Source of the DNA: Selaginella moellendorffii | Lineage: Eukaryota; Plantae; Lycopodiophyta | Direction of reading: 5' to 3' | Length of the DNA stretch: 64,000 bases | Assembly (NCBI RefSeq): GCF_000143415.4 | Contig: NW_003314408.1 | Span: forward strand, 241,860-305,859 | Shown here: piece after piece, positions 7,801 to 19,625 of the stretch | Layout: every line of letters starts with the position of its first letter | Position numbering within the stretch: position 1 is the stretch's first letter | The notes under the pieces: generated by a model | What the model was told of the DNA's origin: nothing | The model's database searches: none | The model's input: the letters and a program-made list of their open reading frames with translations, nothing else | Translations under genes and position numbers: made by a program

Positions 7801-8594
7801 CGTTCGATTTGCAGCTTGTTGACGCCAACTCACGTCATTGACGGCTAGATTCCGCTGACGTGGCTCAGCCACGCTGGAAAATGCCCGGCCAGCGGGGCGG
7901 CGGGTCATCATTTCCACACTGTGGCCATATTCATGCCAAGCGACTCAACCGCGGTTAGGTCTTGTGACCGCGGTCACTCCATCCAGAGTATAGCTTTCTT
8001 GTTCTTTTTGTGGATGCGAGGGAGGGAGGGAGATGGTGCGCCTACACGCTCGCCTCGCCCACCCGGGCGCACAGTTCTTGTTCTTGATCTCCCAGGCGCC
8101 GGGGCAGATGGATGGCGCCATAGATGCGCGCCGCGTCGAGATCGGCGGAAAAGATTTCGCTCGCGTTCTCGCCATTTTCGGCGCCGCGCACCGCAAATCC
8201 TTCGTCTTGGAGCTGGAATCGCCCCCGAGGTACGTAATATCGAGGTATCCGCCGCGACGAGCGATTTAGGAGGCCGAATTGCAGTGTGTCGAGCCGAATT
8301 TCTTCGGATTCCACAGTGTCAGTGTCGCAATAGGCCCCGGCCTTGATCGCTAAACCTGTCGTGTGGATCCGGCCTAGAAGTAGAATCAAGTGTCGCGAGT
8401 TTCTTTCTTGGCAGGGTTTTTGGTGCTCCGTTCGTGCGTGGCACTGCATATAGGAAGGATTGTGATGCATGGCATGTGTCGATGGGAAGTTTTGCTTGCG
8501 AGAATAGCCTTGGAGAGCTTGCAATCGCTGATCAAACAAGGCTTGAGGTTTTTCCAGGAGAAATCTCGAAGGTTTTGTTGCTAAATTGTGAGTG

Positions 8595-8689
8595 TGTCTG
8601 TGATATTGACAAGGCTCAATCAGGCTGCAATGCTACTCGAGCTAATTAGTGATGCTGCCAGCTTGAGCCGTGCCAATATCACATAGATA
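8595..8689 (+). ncRNA. MIR171: MIR171 precursor hairpin 1 (mature 3p TTGAGCCGTGCCAATATCACA at 8663-8683)
   Basis: The 3' arm carries the conserved miR171 sequence. The 5' arm 8599-8619 (TGTGATATTGACAAGGCTCAA) is its reverse complement with 2 mismatches, and pairing extends below the duplex. Confidence 0.92.
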
Positions 8690-11600
8690 GCTAGCCATGA
8701 CTTCCCTGATCCCGCGTGTTCCTCGAGTCGAGCTTGACGTCTTGGACTTTCCATTTTCAAAGGCAAATTCTTATTTTTCTTCTTCTTCTTTTTCCATTGG
8801 ACTTTGCTAGATTGTCATGGCCAAGTTTTCCGGTTCCGTATGCTTAGCTCTTGACTAAGTTGCTTAAACAAGTAGCAATCGCGCGAATGTGCTCTTTCCA
8901 GCTGACGTGCTTTGCAGGCTTTGAGTAATCTGGCCAGCTTAGAATCCATTCTTGAAAGGAACGCGATGTTCATCATGCGAGTGGGGACTAGGCTATCACT
9001 CTGGGAGACCGGGCGGCGTGGTTGCAATGGAAGTTGAAAGAAGGTAATGTTTAAGCTATTCTTTTCTTTTTTTCTCCCCCGCGGACTATATCGTATTCTA
9101 TCATCTTTTCTCAAAATGTCAACTTCCGAGCTAGAAAGAGACCTTTGAATTGCTGCAAACCAGCTGTGTCGAAGGCGATCACCAATCGAGCGTTACGCGA
9201 GAAGATTTTAATGTTTTGAGGCATGGGCGACAAGATTGAAGCGGGGTTGACTAAATTCGAGTAAGAAACTCTTGGAGGATTTGAGGCCGCGCGCATGACA
9301 CTGGGTGTAGTGAGCTATATCTGGGAGAAGTAAAATTAATCCTCGGAGGACCTTGGCCTGGGGAATGTTCGCAAAGAAATGGTCACAGTGCTCGAAGGAT
9401 GGCATGATTTGTAATGCTGGATGTGTGAATATGTTTAAACAAGCCATGGTACCATTTCCATGCACGCTTGGATTGGACCTAGTTAAACTATGTGTTGACC
9501 CGTGAAATCCTAAGATCGTTTTGGAAGCTAACAACACAAGCTATAGTTATCAACACACACCAAAAACTTTCTTACCCCTTCCCTCCACGCGAGGTCAAGG
9601 CCGTCATGATGATTTACCCGGGTGTCGAAACAACCATCTCGGATTCTTTACTTTTTTCTAAGTTTTCACCCTCTCTCGGGAATCATGAATCCACGAAGGA
9701 ATCCATTAAGGCAGCCTCGGAATTTCTCGAAAGTTTAATGAATGGTACATTTTGTGCTTGCATTGCAATGCAAGCTAAGGTAAAAATGTAAGCTTATAGC
9801 TGACCTCCGTGTTATTATAATTGTTTAGCATCTTTCTATGAAGATTTGCAGAGAGAGCTACTCTAAGAGTTTCTACCATGAGGGGGCAAAAAGGAAGACA
9901 AGCACAAGCTAGATAAGTTCTATAGCATGATGTATGTGGCATGTGGCGCATGCCACCATGATCATCATGATCTCCACCCCCGGAATTTCCACGCACGCCG
10001 AATTGTACCGTGGAGAACACCGACCGATCCCCCAAGGAAAGGCATGCGCCACCCCCATGCCATTCATGTGATCCCCATCTCCCATAGATTCTCTCCCCAT
10101 GCAGCAAATGCCCAGTTGCGGCAAAAGCAAGCGCGCAAAACGCACGCCCCTTTTTCGTCAAGAGGATGGAAGACTCTTGCTCCAGGCACGATGTCACGAA
10201 ATACCACTTCCTTGACACGCGAGGTGTCAATCTTTTGAAGTCTCCGTCCCAAAGACAAGAGATCGATCCAAGCGCGCTTTTCGTGAGAACCAGGATGATT
10301 ACACGGAGAAATGTCTTTCGTCAAATGGCTGGCTTGACATGCTCGCAAACTTCCATTCGCTCTCGTTCTCTCGATGTTCGAAGTATTTTATTTCTATGTA
10401 GAGGTCGTATAGGCAGTTGACTCACTAATTTACTAGCATGCCTTGTCCTGATATCGATCATTCAAAAACATGGCGCTGCCTCCAAAGTGATTATCACAAA
10501 TCGAAGCTGGTTTTCCTGATATACTCCATGGCCAGCCCGCGCCCCCTCAAGAACTTTCGCATTAAACTGTGTCGTTTCTTTGAGTGGGATGGGATCCATC
10601 TATTCCTCGCCTTGATCCCAGAGCGATGATTCTATACTAATATATATACACATATATATACACCTGCAACTACACGAAATCGAAGTATTCAAACGCAATA
10701 GCAAGTTATAGTCGTCGCGTACTGCTTGGATCTTCGTAACTGGATCACAAAAGGAGACCGCGACCATCAACATTGAGCCGCGCGAAAAGAAAGCTTTGCG
10801 CATGAATGAATGGAGGCGTGCCGCTGGGACCAATTTCCCTCGCTTAGATTATCTTGTATACAAATGTATTCCAGTTCCCAACAACAATAGCTGGGGGGCT
10901 TCACCTAAGTTTTACATAATTTCTTTGTTTTCTCTCCAGTTATTTTGGTGTGTAGATCACGGGATGGCGTACAGACGTACGCAGCATATTGTATCTCTAC
11001 ATGCTCTTTGAAAGTCAAGGTTTATGCTTGTATATACAGTGTTGAGCGAAGCTTTACCACAGCAATCATTCGCTTGTGCATGCTTGAGCTCGAAACTTCG
11101 AGATCTGGAACAAAATTATATAGCATAATGTTTGTTTAGCTTGTCTTTGTTACTCCTGACCCTCGCCTGATCATCTAGCTAATGGATGGTGAGTGACTTT
11201 TGCAAAATGGGTGTGTGAAGAAAAGGTGGCCAAACAAAAAGAGGGGAAAAAGTGGTGGCTTGTCCAAGGCTCGCAATCATGGAGACAAAATGTACAGTGT
11301 TTGTTTTTCTGTGACTTTGTCTAACTGTTTGATTTTGAATGATCATTCTGACAATCTGCATTTCTGTGTTGTACTGGAGAATAAGTCACAGGAATAAAAA
11401 AGCTCAAGGGCAAGGAAGAAAAACATCAGATCAGAAAGAAAAGAACTGGCATCATTCCTTTTGATACCTGGCAATTGGCTTCACTCATTTCATCTCCCTG
11501 GCTTGGCTTGTGGTGGCTTAAACCTTAAAAACTGCATAATTATACCTAGCTTGGCATCTTGGAACACATGAGTTATCAAGCAAGTATTGTTTATCTATGA

Positions 11601-13116
11601 TACATTGGTGATTGGTGTGTACATTTAAAGTCAATCAGTCACAATTCCATGGAGAATTCCCTTTGAAGCTGCTGGGTGGATCTATTCTCGACTTCCAACA
11701 AACAGGATTTTCAAAAATTCGAATTCGGCATATTCGGATTGTTTTTTATGCGCCATTTTTCTGGGGGGACTAAAAGTTTGATTTTCCTCGGAAGATGGAA
11801 AGTGTGTGTGTGTTGCGGGGTGAATGAATGGGAGAACGAGGGCTATAAAAGCTGTGCAGCATGGGGCTTGATTGAGCATGCGTTTTAAGATCCTTTTTCT
11901 TTTGGGTTTGTTCCTCTTCTTGAATCCACACGGGCTGATCGATTCCTTCCCAGATTCCTCTTCCTCTTTCTGAATCTGAAGTACTGAATTCCTCCTTCTA
12001 TTGGTGTGTTATTATGGAACAAGGTACCATAGATGCAAGATAAAGCAAAATCCATCCAAATCACCCTCTCCCAAGTGCAAGAAAGTCTATGATCACACAT
12101 ATATAGGTGAGGCTTTTGTTTCCATCCTTTTTGTGTGTAGAACAAAGGGTGTGGATTTTTTGGTGGGAATGAATGCAGCCCGGATGCCTTTGCCAACATG
12201 GGTGTCTGTGAAAGCTTGCAGGGGAATATTCGCATGGGTAGCTAGTCATTATGCTGGTTTCATCTTTTCTTTGTTGCTTGGGCAGGCAGCGAATTGTAAG
12301 TAATTGTCTGGGTGGTGGGGGAATTCTTGTGCTTTCGGTGTCTCCAGATCTTGGGTTCTTGTGAAAGTCTTTGAATTTGCGCCTCATAATGTGTGTATGC
12401 ATATATAGGTCCTGATTTTGTTGGATTTTCATGGTTTTGATTTTGGCTCTCTCTCTTTCGGGTCGCTCTTGGAGGAACGGGCAATTTTTTCTAATCTCAT
12501 TGCATTGAATTTGGATCTTGAATTTGTGTGTTGCTGTCACTGCAAGCTGGTTGCTGATTGGTATGGCGCGATGCAAATTTCTCCCATCTCAATCGAGCAG
12601 GCGCATTCATATCGATCGTTTTCTTTGCTCTTTCTTCGTGTTTTTGTTTGTTTGCTTGTTTTTCTTTCTTTCTTTCCTTCCCATACAGGCATATGTGCGG
12701 AATGTGTAGGTCTTGACAATGGATGCTCGCAACAAGGACGTCAGCAAGGAAAGAACAAGGTGAAAATTTTCCTTTTCTCCATTTTTAAAATGGACGAAAG
12801 ATCGCATATCAGATCCTCTTGGCGATCACTTAAAGGTAACAGGTTAATTCTCTCACAGTCCCTCCTCTTTGGTACCGCGATGGCGATTGCCTGCTTGCGC
12901 TTTCTTTCTTTCTTTCCTTCCTCTCTCTTCCTGCATAATTGCCGATCACAAGCTCGAGTGGTTCTTCTTGCCTGCTCTTCACTTGACAGAATCCCAGCAT
13001 GTTTTTCCCCGACCATTAACTCTACACCACTCCCGTAAGCTTCAAGCGAGCGAGAACGAGCAATCGTCTAGTGAGAAGCATATCATCTCATCAATCACTC
13101 ACTGCCAGTCTAGACT

Positions 13117-13722
13117 TGTGTGTGTGTGTGTGGGTACAGTGGTTTTCCTTGTCCACGAGAGTGATGATACTCTAATCCAATCCAATGCATCCAAACAGTC
13201 GTCATCGCCCCGCTCTGGACAGTGCAAAGTCCTTGTCACCCCCCGTTTGTGCTCCCCCGTTTGCAACAGAAGCACACACACAAGCTTCACATAAACCTTT
13301 GTCATACAATTTGCCTCAAGCCTCTTTGTAGCCAAGGCCTCTATTCGAACCAGCAGCAGGGATTCAGGCCGGAAGCACGCATCTTTCCACTGCAAACGGC
13401 TTCTTTCTTCCTATCATTACCACACCAGTCCTTTTCCTTTTGTTGGGTGATAGCGGCAGAGAGAGCTTGCCAAAACCTCATCACAAAGAGTGTGAATGTA
13501 TGTGTGTGTGTGTGTGTGTGTTAAGAGCGAGTGCTTTCACCACTGCACAATTGCATTGAATTCCACCTCTCTGGACGACTGTTGCTGAGCGTGTGAGCGT
13601 GAGAGCAATTGAGAGAGAGTCACTGTGCGCGCTCTAACAGGAACAAACAAATAGTTTGTTTGTGTTTGTGAGGCACAGCAGCGGCAAAACAGTCGCAGCA
13701 GCAGCGGCAGCAGCAGCAGCAG
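13117..13722. repeat. Microsatellite cluster: (TG)8, (TG)10 and imperfect (CAG)n
   Basis: (TG)8 at 13117-13132, (TG)10 at 13501-13520, and a CAG/CGG run at about 13695-13722, all read directly. Confidence 0.85.
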
Positions 13723-15633
13723 ATGCTCACGCTTTGCTCATTTTCGCATCGTTTCCTGCCTAGTATTTCTTGTGTACTGAGCACAGGTTTTCATTGTATA
13801 GTCGTGTGGGAATTAACTTCCGAATGCCGCCTTTCCTTTTTTTTTCTCCGTTTTTTTTCTCTGGCTTCTGCTTCTGCTGCTGCTGCTGGTCTATCCTTGT
13901 ACCTATGCCGAAAATGAAAGGCGTACAAATATACACACGCAGTACTCTTGGGGAGGGTGTGTTCTTGTTGGTCTGCCTCGTACTGTCACTGAGAGCTATA
14001 CAAGATGATAGATCCACACACATATACCCTCCTTCACTCTCTTCTTCACTTCACACTACAGTTGACTTTAGAGGCCAGTTTTTCACTTTTATTTTTGCCA
14101 AAATGACAAATTCTTGTGCATTGGCTGGCTGCTGCTGCAAATGCCTCCTGGTTGTCCTGCACTAGAGCATTTAGTACAGTTGCACAGGGAAGTTGTGAGT
14201 TGTGTGGCATTACTTGGCTCTCTGGCTGTTCATTGTTACTATTTAGCAATTTTCTTGGGATTTTCCTTTCTTTTTTTTTTTCGGTTTTTTTGTTTATATA
14301 GGTGGCAAGTCATATGTCAGCATTTGTTTCTCAAAGACCTTACAGGAGGCAGCATAGAGATCTTAGTTACTAATCACTGCCAGGGGGAGGATCAAATTTC
14401 TTGTGATAGCTACAGTTTCCATCTCTTTCTTTCTCTCTTCCTTTCTTTCCTCTTCCTTCCCGACCGGAGCTCGACTTTCTCTTCCATTCCCTCATGCATC
14501 GATCGAGTGACTTCTTCTTCGTCTTGTTACTCTCTTCTTCCTCCTTTTTTGGTTTTCTTTTTTCCTCTATTCTCTTCCTTCCTGCTCAAATGCTCTTGGG
14601 CCGAGTCCTTGCTCCCCATGAATGAAGACTGATTGAGTTTGAAAAAATGTATGCATTGAATTGCCTCCTCCTGGCCACTCCTGCAGCTCGACAGCAGGGA
14701 GACCTCCCTCCTCATCGCAGATCTTTATCTTCCTTTCTCTTTTACCCGAGTTCCTTTGTTTTACTTCCACTCTCGGGCATTTGCAGATGCCCGAGAGGAA
14801 GAGAGTGTGAGAGAGTCAAAGCTGAGATCTCCTATCTCTTATTTTCCTGCTGGAGTGGAAGTATTAAATGAGAACAATGCTCGGAAGAGTCACCACGTTT
14901 CTTTCAAAGCATTCAAGGTGGCTGAAGTGCCATGCCATGCAAAGCCTTGACTTTTGAGGCACACATCCGGATTTCTTCTTTCTTTCACCATTTTTCTTTT
15001 CCACTGCTGCGACACTAGAGTCACTCTTCGCTCCTCCTCGCTGGTGTGGTGTGGTGAGAGGGGACCGGGCCTGATTATAAATAGAGCGTTAGAGAGTGTG
15101 GGACTTTATTGCCACGGTTTAAAATCTTTGTGGTGGTGATGGTGGTGGTGGCGAGAGAGGTGAGAGCCGGCCGATCGATCGATCATCGGTAGAAACAGTG
15201 GCGCAGCAGCAGGATGGATCGGATCAAACAAGCTTCGGCTTTGTAACCGCTGGAGGTTTCGGTTCTTCGCTGCTGCTGCTAGTATATATTCTTGTGCCAC
15301 TGTTGTTCTTGCCGGGTCGGGTTGGAGAGATCCGTTTGAGAGAGAGAGAGAGAGATCTGTGAGAATCTTGGCGTGGTTTTGTTTCTTCCCGGCATGCTAT
15401 CACTGCACTGCTACTGCAAGTATATCTTGCCTTTTCTCTCCTAACTGACGCTATAAATCGCTGCAGGCACCGCTTATCGATTGAGATCTTCGGACTGGAT
15501 CTCCAGATCGTCATTTTTACTATTCCTTTCTTTCTCGAGCTCTCGCGTGCTTTTGGTTTTCTCGTGAGCTAGCTCCACTCGGGACTCCACTAACGATTTG
15601 ATATTCGTCGTCGATCGTCCAGGGAAATACATG

Positions 15634-15729
15634 CGAGGTATGTGATATTGGGATGGCTCAATCAGATGGCGTTCGCTGCAATGCTCAGCCAGCGCTCTCA
15701 AATTGAGCCGCGCCAATATCACATCCTTG
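15634..15729 (+). ncRNA. MIR171: MIR171 precursor hairpin 2 (mature 3p TTGAGCCGCGCCAATATCACA at 15703-15723)
   Basis: The 5' arm 15641-15661 (TGTGATATTGGGATGGCTCAA) pairs with the 3' arm with 2 mismatches and 1 G:U. The antisense translation gives VILARLN, the peptide encoded by the miR171 site of HAM/SCL6 GRAS genes. Confidence 0.93.
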
Positions 15730-16700
15730 GAAAAAAAACTCTTCAAGATCGCTGCTGGTCTCCAGGTTCCTTGTTTTCTTTCTTTTTCAGTTTTTCTGTT
15801 TCTCCTTTGCTACTTGTCTTTGCTACTTCTTCTTGGTTGTTTGGAGGATAAAACTACGCGACGGTAAGGCATTTGGATCTACAAGTTCGTCGAAAAGTCC
15901 ATGCATTTAGATCTAGAACGCAACTGCGGCGATCGAATGCTTCCAGCTTTCGTCAAGCCTTTTTCCAGGACCCCAAGATCATCATATCATTTCTTTCGTT
16001 TCAGCTCCTCATGGTCGAGTTTGTAGACTCCAAACAAAGACGTTTGTCAATGATATTCCTTGCTTCTTTTTCGATGAATCCTTCCTTCTCTCACTCAGGT
16101 ATTACTCCAGATGGCTACTACCAGCTTACTTCCATCTAATCGGTCGGTCTTTACTCGTCTAGATAGACATTAATAAATAATGTGAGCCAAGTACCTCTAG
16201 AGCCTAGCTTTCAAGGAATAGCCTTTGAGCAATTTGGTTCTCTTACATTAAATAATCCATTTATGAGCACGTACTTTCGAACCAATCGTGGATATTCTTT
16301 TAGGGCTTATACAAAAGGTTTCCGGGCTTTTACGAATGTAGCGCCTGAGATTCCGGAATTGTCAAGTAGTACAAGGTCCACGCCTTAAGAGAACATACAT
16401 GATATTAAATTGTTCGGGAGGCCTCTTCATGCTTTCGTTTGCAGCATCCAGACTCCGCGAGAATGTTTACGTGACAAGTTCCAATCAGACAAAGCTTGAT
16501 AGCAACATCTGAGATGCCTGTGACGAGCACGAAATGAAAATCTAGAAACCAGATCAAAGAAAAAATCAACGCAAGTGGCTCTCCCAAGAACAGAGTGGAA
16601 ATCGTCACCTCTCTTTCTTATCGAAGTGCTGCATGGCAGCACACCTTAATTCCTGCGCTGCCGTCGCCCACAGTGGTGTTGAAAGTTTGTAGAAGAACAC

Positions 16701-16775
16701 CACGTGGAGATCCCACCGTAAAAGCTGTGGCCTCCTTGCGTCCTGGAGATTGGGAAGGGATGGGTTAATATAAAA
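16701..16775 (+). promoter_or_regulatory. Candidate core promoter of the GRAS gene (G-box and TATA box)
   Basis: CACGTG at 16701-16706 and TATAAAA at 16769-16775, about 80 nt before ATG 16851. Confidence 0.5.
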
Positions 16776-16850
16776 ACTTTGTACTCCAAGCTCCTAGGAA
16801 ACCAACAAACTTACCTGAAAAGTTTTGAGTGTCCCCCCTCCTCCCTTCAA

Positions 16851-18467
16851 ATGCTGCTCGATACCAGCTTTGATCGTCTAAATAGTAGCTTCTCCCCGAA
16901 TTGCTTTGGTTCTCCAGTCGAGGATGTCCCTATGGATACTTCTATCGCTGACATTCCTGTTTTGGTAGAGAGATGGAGCTTTGAGAGCCATTCACCTTCG
17001 TCCTTCGATGATAGCCGGAACTCCGAGGATACTGTCTCGCCCGACTACAGTGGTGAGTTCGTCCAGTCTTCAGCAGCTTGTGAGGACGACGATCTCAGAA
17101 GATTGATGAAGGCTATGCTCGATGACCATGAAAGGTCTTTCCCGGATCCCCAGCAGGTTGCCGTCAATCCAGTTTCTCCTCCACAGTATCAGCAGCAGCA
17201 AGAGATCGAGAGGAGTTTAGTCGACTTTAGGCACCACTCCCACGATGAAAGAGTGGACTTTGTCTACCCCGAACTTGGAGTGCAAGTGCATCCCTGGGAC
17301 GAAGGCATGGACAGCATCCGTCTTGTCCATCTGTTGCTGGGAGCAGCCGAAGCCATCGTCTGTGGTGAGGCTGATCTCGCCATAGCCATAATTGACCGCC
17401 TGAAAAGCTGCTGCTCCACTCAGTCAAGAACAACAATGCAAAGAATTGCGGCTTACTTTCGCGACGCTCTCAATTGCAGGCTCCACGGGCTGAAGTTCTT
17501 CAGCCGGACCGAGTCCCTGTTCGACACTGTCGGAGCCTTCCATGTCCTGCACGAGATCTGCCCCTACATCAAGTTTGGCCACTTCTCAGCAAACCAGGCC
17601 ATCCTCGAATCCGTGGCCGGAGAGCAAAGAGTCCACATTGTTGACTTTGATATAACGGACGGGGTCCAGTGGCCTTCGCTGATGCAATCGCTGGCTTTGA
17701 GAGCTGGAGGTCCTCCGCAACTCAAGATCACTGCTCTCTACCGGCCGAACGCCAAGGGGGCCCTCTCCACCACCCAGGAAACTGGGAAGAGGCTGGCCGC
17801 TTGTGCTCGACAATTCAACGTTCCCTTCGTTTTCAACCAAGTCCGAGTTGATGGAGAATCTGAGGAGTTCCGCAGCTCGTCCCTCAAGCTCATACAAGGA
17901 GAGGCACTCGTTGTCAACTGCATGCTCCATCTCCCACACATGTCATGTCACTCCCGGGATGCTGTCCGTTTCTTTCTCGGGAAGATGGCGGCCATCCGGC
18001 CAAGAGTCCTGGCGATAGTCGAGGAAGATCTCAGCTGCACGTCGACGACGTTCACGGGACGTTTCCACGAGGCCCTGTACCACTACTCCACCCTCTTCGA
18101 TTCCCTGGAAGCAACGCTGGCATCGGAGGATGAAATGCGTTCTCTGGTCGAGCGTGTCTTTTTGGGACCCCGGATTAAGAACACGGTCACTTCGGCCGTG
18201 AGTCAATCTCCTTTGGAAAAAGAAGCTGTGAGTCACGTAGACTTCTCCGGCAAGATGGTGAAGAACAGATGGTCGGGCCTTGCCGAAGCCGTCGGCTTCC
18301 AGCAGCGTTCTTTCAGCTCTTATAATCGTTGCCAGGCAAGGCTCCTCGTTGGACTGTTTCAAGACGGGCATCAAATTCAAGAAGACGAAGATACGATGTT
18401 ACTTTGCTGGAAATCCAGACCTTTAATTGCAGCTTCTGTCTGGAGTTCCAGCAGCGATCCAGCATGA
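16851..18467 (+). CDS. Intronless GRAS transcription factor, NSP2-like
   Basis: First ATG at 16851 (the ORF track starts at TTG 16779). LHRI motif IRLVHLLLGAAEA, MQRIAAYFRDAL, PYIKFGHFSANQAILESV, VHIVDFDITDGVQWPSLMQ, NCMLHLPH, RFHEALYHYSTLFDSLE, ERVFLGPRI and WKSRPLIAASVW. This combination is typical of the NSP2/SCL26 subfamily. Confidence 0.9.
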   Translation: MLLDTSFDRLNSSFSPNCFGSPVEDVPMDTSIADIPVLVERWSFESHSPSSFDDSRNSEDTVSPDYSGEFVQSSAACEDDDLRRLMKAMLDDHERSFPDPQQVAVNPVSPPQYQQQQEIERSLVDFRHHSHDERVDFVYPELGVQVHPWDEGMDSIRLVHLLLGAAEAIVCGEADLAIAIIDRLKSCCSTQSRTTMQRIAAYFRDALNCRLHGLKFFSRTESLFDTVGAFHVLHEICPYIKFGHFSANQAILESVAGEQRVHIVDFDITDGVQWPSLMQSLALRAGGPPQLKITALYRPNAKGALSTTQETGKRLAACARQFNVPFVFNQVRVDGESEEFRSSSLKLIQGEALVVNCMLHLPHMSCHSRDAVRFFLGKMAAIRPRVLAIVEEDLSCTSTTFTGRFHEALYHYSTLFDSLEATLASEDEMRSLVERVFLGPRIKNTVTSAVSQSPLEKEAVSHVDFSGKMVKNRWSGLAEAVGFQQRSFSSYNRCQARLLVGLFQDGHQIQEDEDTMLLCWKSRPLIAASVWSSSSDPA

Positions 18468-18794
18468 TTATTCAAAACTCGTTTTCCCTGTGTATAGAAA
18501 TAAGAGACACCTTGAGCAGAAACCAGCAGCTTTATCCGCATAAGCTTACGCTCTTATGCCGACTTTGTTCCAGACCAAGCTCTCGCTTGCTGTCTCACTC
18601 GGTTACAAAGAAAGCCTGCAATCCATATGAGAACGATGCTTCCTTTTAAAAGTTTGATTACCTCTAGCAGCTCGAGCTGAAAAGGATTTCCTGCATACAA
18701 AGCTTGAGTATCACCATAAGAAAGCGCAGCCCGTACAAGAATCGATCCTTTCTTATCTTTGCCTGTACATGTAACAGTCGACTCTAAAAAACAG

Positions 18795-19625
18795 TTACAT
18801 ATCATTTCCCGGACCGAGCTCCAGCATTTTAGCTTTGTCTCGCTCGGCCATCATCTCAAGGTATGTCTCCGGATCAAAATTATGAGGCTGGTCTGGTTTA
18901 TCCATCTCAATACCGATAAACGCGAATATAAAAAGCACGGTGTAGAGAAATAGATAAGTTGCCTGGAAGCGAAGGTCAGACCATACAGACAAGAAAGAAA
19001 ACAAAAACAAAAGAATAAAGATAAGGAGAAGATTACAGGCGCTCCGAATGCCATGCCGGTGAAGAGAATGGGCAGAAAACTCCATGATATCCATTCTAAC
19101 AAAACAAAAAATTACGATAGGAAAGAGGAAGAAAGAAAAGAAAAACCAAGAGCTCACTTTGGAGTCCTGACGTAGGACCTCCAGCTTTTTCAATCGTCTC
19201 AGCTACAATCTCCCAATATGGTCCTGCCAGCCTACACAAGGTTACTTTCAAGCAAGTAAGAAAAATTACATACTGTCGTCTTCGTTTCCATGCCACGAAT
19301 GAGCGCCATCGGCAATTCCCCAAGGAAAAGAATCCAGCTGCTCATTCATACGAAAATCTCACATCTTTCCCAGAAGAAAACGAGGAAAGTCCCATACCTC
19401 GTCGTCGCCCTTGGTCTTGGCCGGATCCCACACCTCATCCTCATCGATGTCGGGCTCGACGTAGAATCCGAGCTGCCCGTTGGGCGGCCGCAAGAGCAGC
19501 CTCGGCCGCGAAGAAGAAGAAGCTACGCGAATGCCAAACCCTAGGCCCTTGGCGCCGCCACATTCCTGGTGGACGGAGAGAGAAGCTCGCGGAGGAAGCG
19601 GTATGAGCGCCACAGCCATTGCCAT
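18795..19625 (-). CDS. PnsB5: Photosynthetic NDH subcomplex B subunit 5 (PnsB5/NDH18)-like, 5 exons
   Basis: Spliced translation gives a transit peptide, EPDIDED, WGIADGAHSWHG, GPTSGLQ.WISWSFLP...GMAFGAP and IEMDKPDQPHNFDP, matching recalled PnsB5 motifs. Confidence 0.85.

Follow-up and report, generated by a model that had tools for sequence, protein, structure and literature searches.

Two MIR171 hairpins beside an NSP2 gene without its miR171 site in the lycophyte Selaginella moellendorffii

A 64,000-nt stretch of the Selaginella moellendorffii genome (contig NW_003314408.1, positions 241,860 to 305,859, here called the window; scaffold GL377712.1 in assembly GCA_000143415.2) was analysed around two microRNA (miRNA) hairpins of the MIR171 family and the gene that follows them, a GRAS gene orthologous to the symbiosis regulator NSP2 (SmNSP2). 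Both hairpins and NSP2 lie on the + strand, with 7,042 nt between the two hairpin starts and 1,118 nt between the end of the second hairpin and the NSP2 ATG. An earlier note on this DNA had described two complete miR171 hairpins ~7 kb apart in an apparently gene-free stretch at 8–16 kb, the second of them ending ~1.1 kb ahead of the ATG of an NSP2-like GRAS gene in the same orientation, and this description was borne out in each of its parts by the searches reported here. The central features are the following.

8592..8692, + strand: MIR171 hairpin 1; Rfam RF00643 (MIR171_1), 57.0 bits, E = 3.4e-8
8663-8683, + strand: mature miR171 of hairpin 1, TTGAGCCGTGCCAATATCACA, in the 3' arm; star arm at ~8600-8620
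15634..15732, + strand: MIR171 hairpin 2; Rfam RF00643 (MIR171_1), 56.8 bits, E = 3.7e-8
15703-15723, + strand: mature miR171 of hairpin 2, TTGAGCCGCGCCAATATCACA, in the 3' arm; star arm at ~15642-15662
16851..18467, + strand: intronless NSP2-orthologous GRAS gene, 538 aa (511 aa from the RefSeq ATG at 16932)
17385..17405, + strand: decayed miR171 site in leucine heptad repeat I of NSP2, placed by protein and codon alignment

Both hairpins scored above the RF00643 gathering score of 48 and covered model positions 1–101 of 101. Matches to the same model were also obtained on the minus strand (52.6 bits for hairpin 1 and 53.5 bits for hairpin 2), as a near-palindromic stem would lead one to expect; the canonical mature miR171 is found in the 3' arm on the + strand only. 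Each sequence folded into a single stem-loop, with a free energy of -41.2 kcal/mol for hairpin 1 (z = -3.0 against shuffled sequences) and -54.9 kcal/mol for hairpin 2 (z = -8.75), and the miRNA/miRNA* duplex contained two symmetric mismatches in either case. The miR171 core pattern was present four times in the window, always within the hairpin arms, against an expectation of 0.04 occurrences. The 18-nt core of hairpin 2 is the perfect complement of the canonical HAM site GATATTGGCGCGGCTCAA. Comparison of the two hairpins with each other aligned only the stem-loops (~98 nt at 66%), while the flanks were unrelated, so the duplication that produced them must be old; on the same grounds (only 98 nt alignable at 66%, unrelated flanks), a recent tandem duplication was ruled out.

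The arrangement is common to both haplotypes. The second haplotype scaffold, GL377583.1 (locus L008), was collinear with the window at 97.8% identity across 21.6 kb, and it carried both hairpins, base-for-base identical and at unchanged distances from NSP2, in surrounding DNA that differs by ~1% between haplotypes. A description of MIR171-NSP2 adjacency was not found in the papers searched.

It had been anticipated that the hairpins might already be catalogued, and for hairpin 1 a catalogued counterpart is probable: a fern read identical to its mature sequence plus one base was matched to smo-miR171b-3p (PMC5426797). Four miR171/170 genes of S. moellendorffii are present in miRBase (PMC4788410), and we infer that both loci correspond to particular smo-MIR171 entries. 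In addition, both smo-miR171c and its star were located on a transcript by You et al. 2017 (PMC5569507), who recorded 3,761 reads of the sequence TTGAGTCGCGCCAATATCATG. The latter sequence is absent from the window, which places at least one further MIR171 locus elsewhere in the genome. The possibility that all MIR171 genes of the species are located here (two loci on two haplotypes making up the four miRBase entries) was ruled out, since smo-miR171c differs from both isoforms and lies outside the window.

The identity of the GRAS gene was supported by several lines of evidence, all pointing to the NSP2 clade. Its open reading frame (ORF) aligned to Pfam PF03514 over positions 1–373 of 374 (E = 4e-101), and the best solved structure was that of NSP2 itself (9x2r_B, 1.3e-83, 284 bits), with weaker matches to other GRAS proteins such as DELLA (3e-58, 201 bits) and SCARECROW (SCR, 182 bits). 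The best 120 homologues of SmNSP2 were dominated by the NSP2 type, headed at ~50% identity by proteins of this type from liverworts, ferns, Diphasiastrum and seed plants, and one member of the sequence cluster is named 'nodulation-signaling pathway 2 protein [Selaginella moellendorffii]'. No second Selaginella NSP2-like protein was seen among these best 120 homologues. A maximum-likelihood tree was computed from 17 proteins, all of the NSP2 type and with no non-NSP2 outgroup; in it, SmNSP2 was sister to the Diphasiastrum NSP2 with a support of 94/94, a position marked by a long stem branch (1.48 vs 1.07). The ORF is intact on both haplotypes, which differ from each other at 11 synonymous and 12 non-synonymous codons. 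As roughly three quarters of changes would be non-synonymous under neutrality (our estimate), this ratio suggests that NSP2 is under purifying selection.

Targeting of this gene by miR171 was assessed by scoring each 21-mer of 15730–18800 with the standard plant target penalty against four miR171 variants, namely the two local ones, smo-miR171c (PMC5569507 supplement) and mtr-miR171h (sequence from PMC8910752). No site for any of the four was detected in the SmNSP2 mRNA, the best penalty being 10.5 or worse. The local miR171s reached 12.5 at best on the window haplotype and 10.5–11 on the other haplotype, and targeting by smo-miR171c or mtr-miR171h was ruled out by best penalties of 11–12.5. 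At 17385..17405, where the orthologues described below carry the codons GTG ATA TTG GTT CGG CTC AAG (VILVRLK), both Selaginella haplotypes have GCC ATA ATT GAC CGC CTG AAA (AIIDRLK). Nine of the 21 nucleotides are changed, including synonymous changes in the Arg, Leu and Lys codons, and the penalty against the local miR171s at this homologous position is 14.

For comparison, eight NSP2 loci with 10-kb flanks were collected from Marchantia paleacea, M. polymorpha, Calypogeia fissa, Vigna unguiculata, Adiantum nelumboides, A. capillus-veneris, Ceratopteris richardii and Diphasiastrum complanatum. All eight orthologues contained one strong coding-sequence miR171 site per NSP2, with a penalty of 4 or less against the local miR171s (positions L002:11077, L003:11077, L004:11170, L005:11287, L006:11503, L007:10378, L010:11299 and L009:11215, each in the coordinates of its own locus). 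Diphasiastrum has TGTGATATTGGCCCGACTCAA at this site, and the seven other orthologues have GTGATATTGGTTCGGCTCAA(GGA). The site spans the codons VIL[V/A]RLK of leucine heptad repeat I, GTGATATTGGTTCGGCTCAA encoding VILVRLK, and over 23 nt (GTGATATTGGTTCGGCTCAAGGA) it is identical in the three liverworts, the three ferns and Vigna. This miR171h-type site (VIL[VA]RLK) is thus present in 8/8 of the other orthologues and not in Selaginella; we treat it as a regulatory feature and not as a criterion of orthology.

Among 104 amino-acid columns invariant across the eight orthologues (Met and Trp excluded), just four had identical codons in all, and each of these four falls within the site. No other 21-nt stretch of NSP2 is as invariant (17/21 positions, compared with a median of 6), and 23 of 23 positions are invariant when Diphasiastrum is set aside. 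Since invariant codons are confined to the site, conservation acts at the RNA level. NSP2 therefore seems to have inherited its miR171 site from the ancestor of land plants, and the site was lost in the lineage of S. moellendorffii, where NSP2 most likely escaped miR171 control either after the adjacency arose or before it.

The Vigna site scored a penalty of 2 against mtr-miR171h. For the Diphasiastrum site (L009:11215-11235), the best pairing, with a penalty of 3, was obtained with miR171c of the lycophyte type, which PMC5569507 records in abundance from Isoetes, S. uncinata and S. moellendorffii. A small RNA sequenced from the fern Dicranopteris pedata, CGAGCCGAACCAATATCACAC (PMC5569507 supplement file 4), has an 18-nt core exactly complementary to the core of the conserved NSP2 site (GAGCCGAACCAATATCAC), so that a miR171h-like, NSP2-directed isoform does occur outside angiosperms. 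In a 2022 review (PMC8910752), the miR171h-NSP2 module was described as conserved only in mycorrhizal angiosperms; codon-level conservation from liverworts to Vigna argues for an interaction far older than stated there, and points to a miR171-NSP2 interaction that is land-plant-wide.

In the Diphasiastrum site (…GGCCCGACTCAA), an A replaces the G of the other orthologues and pairs with the U that miR171c of the lycophyte type has (UUGAGUCGCGCC…). This exchange of a G-C for an A-U pair would fit co-evolution of site and miRNA, modest evidence in that it involves a single covarying pair. A separate observation concerns the NSP2-like protein P0066 of A. capillus-veneris (L006), which sits on a very long branch (1.79) with its miR171 site intact; retention of the site in the face of such fast protein evolution makes the loss in Selaginella more notable.

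The site in HAM genes encodes ILARLN (PMC3727082), and the NSP2 site (VILVRLK) occupies the homologous position in heptad repeat I. NSP2 being the sister family of HAM (PMC8910752), the site probably predates the split between the two.

Linkage of the kind seen in Selaginella was searched for in the eight comparison loci. Rfam at gathering threshold returned no MIR171 in the 22-kb NSP2 loci of the eight species, the miR171 core pattern was absent from five non-Selaginella NSP2 loci, and no credible miR171-like 21-mer was found on either strand of the eight NSP2 loci besides the coding-sequence site. One weak miR171-like 21-mer 2 kb downstream of the M. paleacea NSP2 (L002:14167, penalty 5.5) was attributed to chance and has no counterpart in M. 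polymorpha. Conserved MIR171-NSP2 linkage was not found at this scale: none of the eight species (0/8) has a MIR171 gene within 10 kb of NSP2, and the linkage is shared only by the Selaginella haplotypes. Flanks of 10 kb provide a fair test in liverworts and a short reach in the large genomes of the ferns and Diphasiastrum. Collectively, the view that a miRNA family here sits beside a gene of the family it targets holds for the linkage, which is real, on one strand and present on both haplotypes, and fails as a regulatory module on both complementarity and conserved synteny, given that SmNSP2 is siteless and the linkage is absent within 10 kb in the eight species.

The intervening DNA was searched for other genes and signals. 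Nine ORFs (131–206 aa) were present at 7–16.8 kb, with no Pfam match above noise for any of them, and the idea of hidden protein genes in this interval was rejected on that basis. The sole annotated gene there is an unsupported model of 111 aa (window 8014-9037, + strand) that spans hairpin 1, has no Pfam match and is absent from the other haplotype; the model probably reflects an ab initio artefact or the misreading of a primary miRNA transcript as a protein gene. A 25-nt inverted repeat with 88% complementarity, formed by (CAG)n at 13690-13726 and (CTG)n at 13864-13888 some 140 nt apart, is low-complexity sequence, probably without meaning. A motif scan of the region from upstream of hairpin 2 to NSP2 gave the following features.

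15076 (TATAAAT), 15283 (TATATAT) and 15452 (TATAAAT), span 15076..15458, + strand: TATA-like boxes upstream of hairpin 2
15733..16850, + strand: spacer between hairpin 2 and the NSP2 ATG, 1,118 nt with 16 ATGs, the last at 16760
15863, + strand: donor-like GGTAAG in the spacer
16172, + strand: AATAAA in the spacer
16438, + strand: acceptor-like TTTGCAG in the spacer
16769..16775, + strand: TATAAAA box, ~80 nt upstream of the NSP2 ATG

The boxes at 15076-15458, located ~560, 350 and 180 nt ahead of hairpin 2, are candidate promoters for a primary transcript of its own. Likewise, the TATAAAA at 16769 is a candidate promoter for NSP2 alone, with a leader free of upstream ATGs: there is no ATG from this box to 16851, compared with 16 further upstream in the spacer. 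These sequence signals weakly favour separate promoters. Base composition offers a further hint. The + strand is markedly richer in T than in A at 8-9 kb and from 11.5 to ~16 kb (AT skew of -0.17 to -0.31, with many CT-rich tracts), and this skew stops ~800 nt short of NSP2, as might be expected of + strand primary miRNA transcripts that end ahead of the NSP2 promoter. Long non-coding transcripts of the + strand, with the hairpins inside them, may be what the skew marks. Between haplotypes, the spacer is no less divergent than other intergenic DNA. A P1BS-like GGATATTC occurs at 16290-16297, 560 nt upstream of the NSP2 ATG, and three more occur at 11-12.3 kb; as a sign of shared phosphate-starvation control, however, these were uninformative (19 in the window against 12 expected, an enrichment that was not significant).

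Taken together, we consider that the locus most probably holds two independent MIR171 genes, which act in trans on mRNAs of the HAM clade and have come to lie beside NSP2 by a lineage-specific accident (probability roughly 0.68). Because SmNSP2 is siteless and its orthologues in the eight comparison species have no MIR171 gene within 10 kb, we regard the neighbourhood as probably incidental. According to this explanation, the MIR171 genes of the window are old paralogues, separate from each other, that encode canonical miR171 isoforms of the kind catalogued for S. moellendorffii and occupy a 9-kb, gene-poor stretch upstream of a single-copy NSP2. Each hairpin would probably be transcribed from its own promoter and cut by DCL1, and the 3'-arm miRNA loaded into AGO1. 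Elsewhere in the genome, mRNAs of HAM-clade GRAS genes with the canonical site, GAUAUUGGCGCGGCUCAAUCA, would be the expected targets; this site is reported for the HAM orthologues of S. moellendorffii (PMC3727082), which makes them the expected trans target of the window miRNAs. The neighbouring NSP2 is not a target, its ancestral site having been destroyed in the Selaginella lineage, and would probably be driven by its own TATA promoter with a short leader lacking upstream ATGs. The adjacency itself would most likely represent a lineage-specific rearrangement in a very compact genome and not a conserved regulatory module.

Several observations count against this explanation. The genome holds ~22,000 genes, of which ~50 are GRAS genes. 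By a rough estimate, the prior chance of a given locus neighbouring any GRAS gene is ~0.5% and that of neighbouring NSP2 itself ~0.01%; given several tens of conserved MIRNA loci, the chance that such a coincidence occurs at least once comes to a few per cent, again roughly. Such low priors make pure chance somewhat uncomfortable, even allowing for post hoc selection, and we regard the adjacency as mildly surprising and not compelling. The T skew from ~11.5 to 16 kb could also reflect a long + strand transcript. With 10-kb flanks being short for the fern and Diphasiastrum genomes, a looser ancestral linkage may still have existed. Finally, the S. moellendorffii candidate lists consulted in PMC5569507 contain the miR171c type only, and the window isoforms are not among them.

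An alternative in which the position does matter is that MIR171 and NSP2 share a regulatory domain, or that an extended NSP2 precursor takes in hairpin 2. The two outputs would then be linked through transcriptional interference or cropping by DCL1, and the trans site would have been lost as redundant or harmful under constant co-expression. The common strand, the 1,118-nt distance and the layout shared by both haplotypes would all agree with such coupling, as would the fact that, of nine species, the sole siteless NSP2 is the one adjoining MIR171 genes; this last coincidence, being one event in one lineage, has no statistical weight. A read-through transcript could have half of the spacer spliced out between the donor-like 15863 and the acceptor-like 16438, and the T-rich skew of the + strand does run through hairpin 2 to ~16 kb. 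However, that skew ends ~800 nt before NSP2, the TATAAAA box stands 80 nt before the ATG with an ATG-free leader while 16 ATGs and an AATAAA occur in the remainder of the spacer, and the spacer is conserved no better between haplotypes than other intergenic DNA. We therefore hold coupling in cis to be unlikely, and its stronger form, in which the trans-acting site was replaced by coupling in cis and the pair rewired from complementarity to genomic position, to be more doubtful still.

It is also possible, although improbable, that both hairpins are silent or decaying copies and that active miR171 comes from the miR171c-type locus only. The candidates seen in PMC5569507, which include the miR171c type with its 3,761 reads and none with the window cores, would be explained in this way, though that small-RNA study covered one tissue with a read threshold applied. 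The near-perfect duplex geometry and full-length Rfam matches of both hairpins argue otherwise, as does the match of the hairpin 1 mature sequence to miRBase smo-miR171b as cited in PMC5426797. Identity of the hairpins across haplotypes amid ~1% divergence points the same way, weakly, as only ~2 differences would be expected.

The earlier note had further suggested a relic of MIR171 arising beside a GRAS gene, and this found no support in the window. With SmNSP2 as the query and the gene itself masked, tblastn detected no GRAS fragment elsewhere in the window (noise only, E of 4 or worse), and the flanks of the two hairpins are dissimilar. MIR171 dates to the origin of land plants. That the miRNA sprang from an inverted duplication of an NSP2/HAM ancestor, with Selaginella alone keeping a founder beside its parent, would suit the homologous position of the NSP2 and HAM sites in heptad repeat I and the sister relationship of the two families, and is nonetheless highly improbable, as the hairpins resemble GRAS sequence only in arms of 21-24 nt, the 10-kb flanks of NSP2 are free of MIR171 genes in eight species, three liverworts and another lycophyte among them, the genome has one or more additional MIR171 loci (miR171c type) elsewhere, and linkage held in a single lineage for ~450 million years is not parsimonious.

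S. moellendorffii offers a natural case of NSP2 escape from miR171 control, with two MIR171 genes adjoining the escaped gene. Were the adjacency functional, a miRNA-target relationship would have been rewired into cis, which would be unusual; otherwise the locus warns that a miRNA gene can arise next to a member of its target family without targeting it. This case and the nucleotide-level conservation of the NSP2 site in liverworts, ferns, a lycophyte and a legume may be of interest to both symbiosis and small-RNA research.

Several known systems resemble the locus in part. The smo-MIR171 family of miRBase agrees with the window hairpins in species and family, hairpin 1 also through the fern read matched to smo-miR171b-3p, whereas smo-miR171c represents a different locus outside the window. 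A miR171h-NSP2 module was reportedly described by Lauressergues in 2012 and Hofferek in 2014 in Medicago truncatula and other arbuscular-mycorrhizal angiosperms. It involves the same miRNA family and the same target gene family but acts in trans through a conserved coding-sequence site; in Selaginella that site is gone (penalty of 11 or worse), the genes are adjacent and the window encodes no isoform of the miR171h type. A miR171 site is found in just one GRAS gene of Marchantia, MpGRAS10/MpSCL, which the literature describes as a HAM sister. Since P0004, the NSP2 orthologue of M. polymorpha, has the conserved site, it is probably this very gene. In this MpMIR171-MpGRAS10/MpSCL module the site is intact and no MIR171 lies within 10 kb of P0004, and Selaginella is the opposite on both counts. 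The window isoforms are of the canonical type directed at HAM, as in the miR171-HAM (SCL6/22/27, LOM) module; the window itself is without a HAM gene, and the GRAS gene beside the hairpins is a member of NSP2, the sister clade. MIRNA genes of the MIR161/MIR163 type, which are young and lie beside their source gene, show extended arm similarity, and the parent keeps its target site. Like them, the present locus places a miRNA gene beside a member of its target family, but here both the extended similarity and the target site are absent, and few plant miRNA families are as old as MIR171. The parts of the locus are of known kinds, MIR171 genes of a catalogued type and an annotated NSP2 gene.

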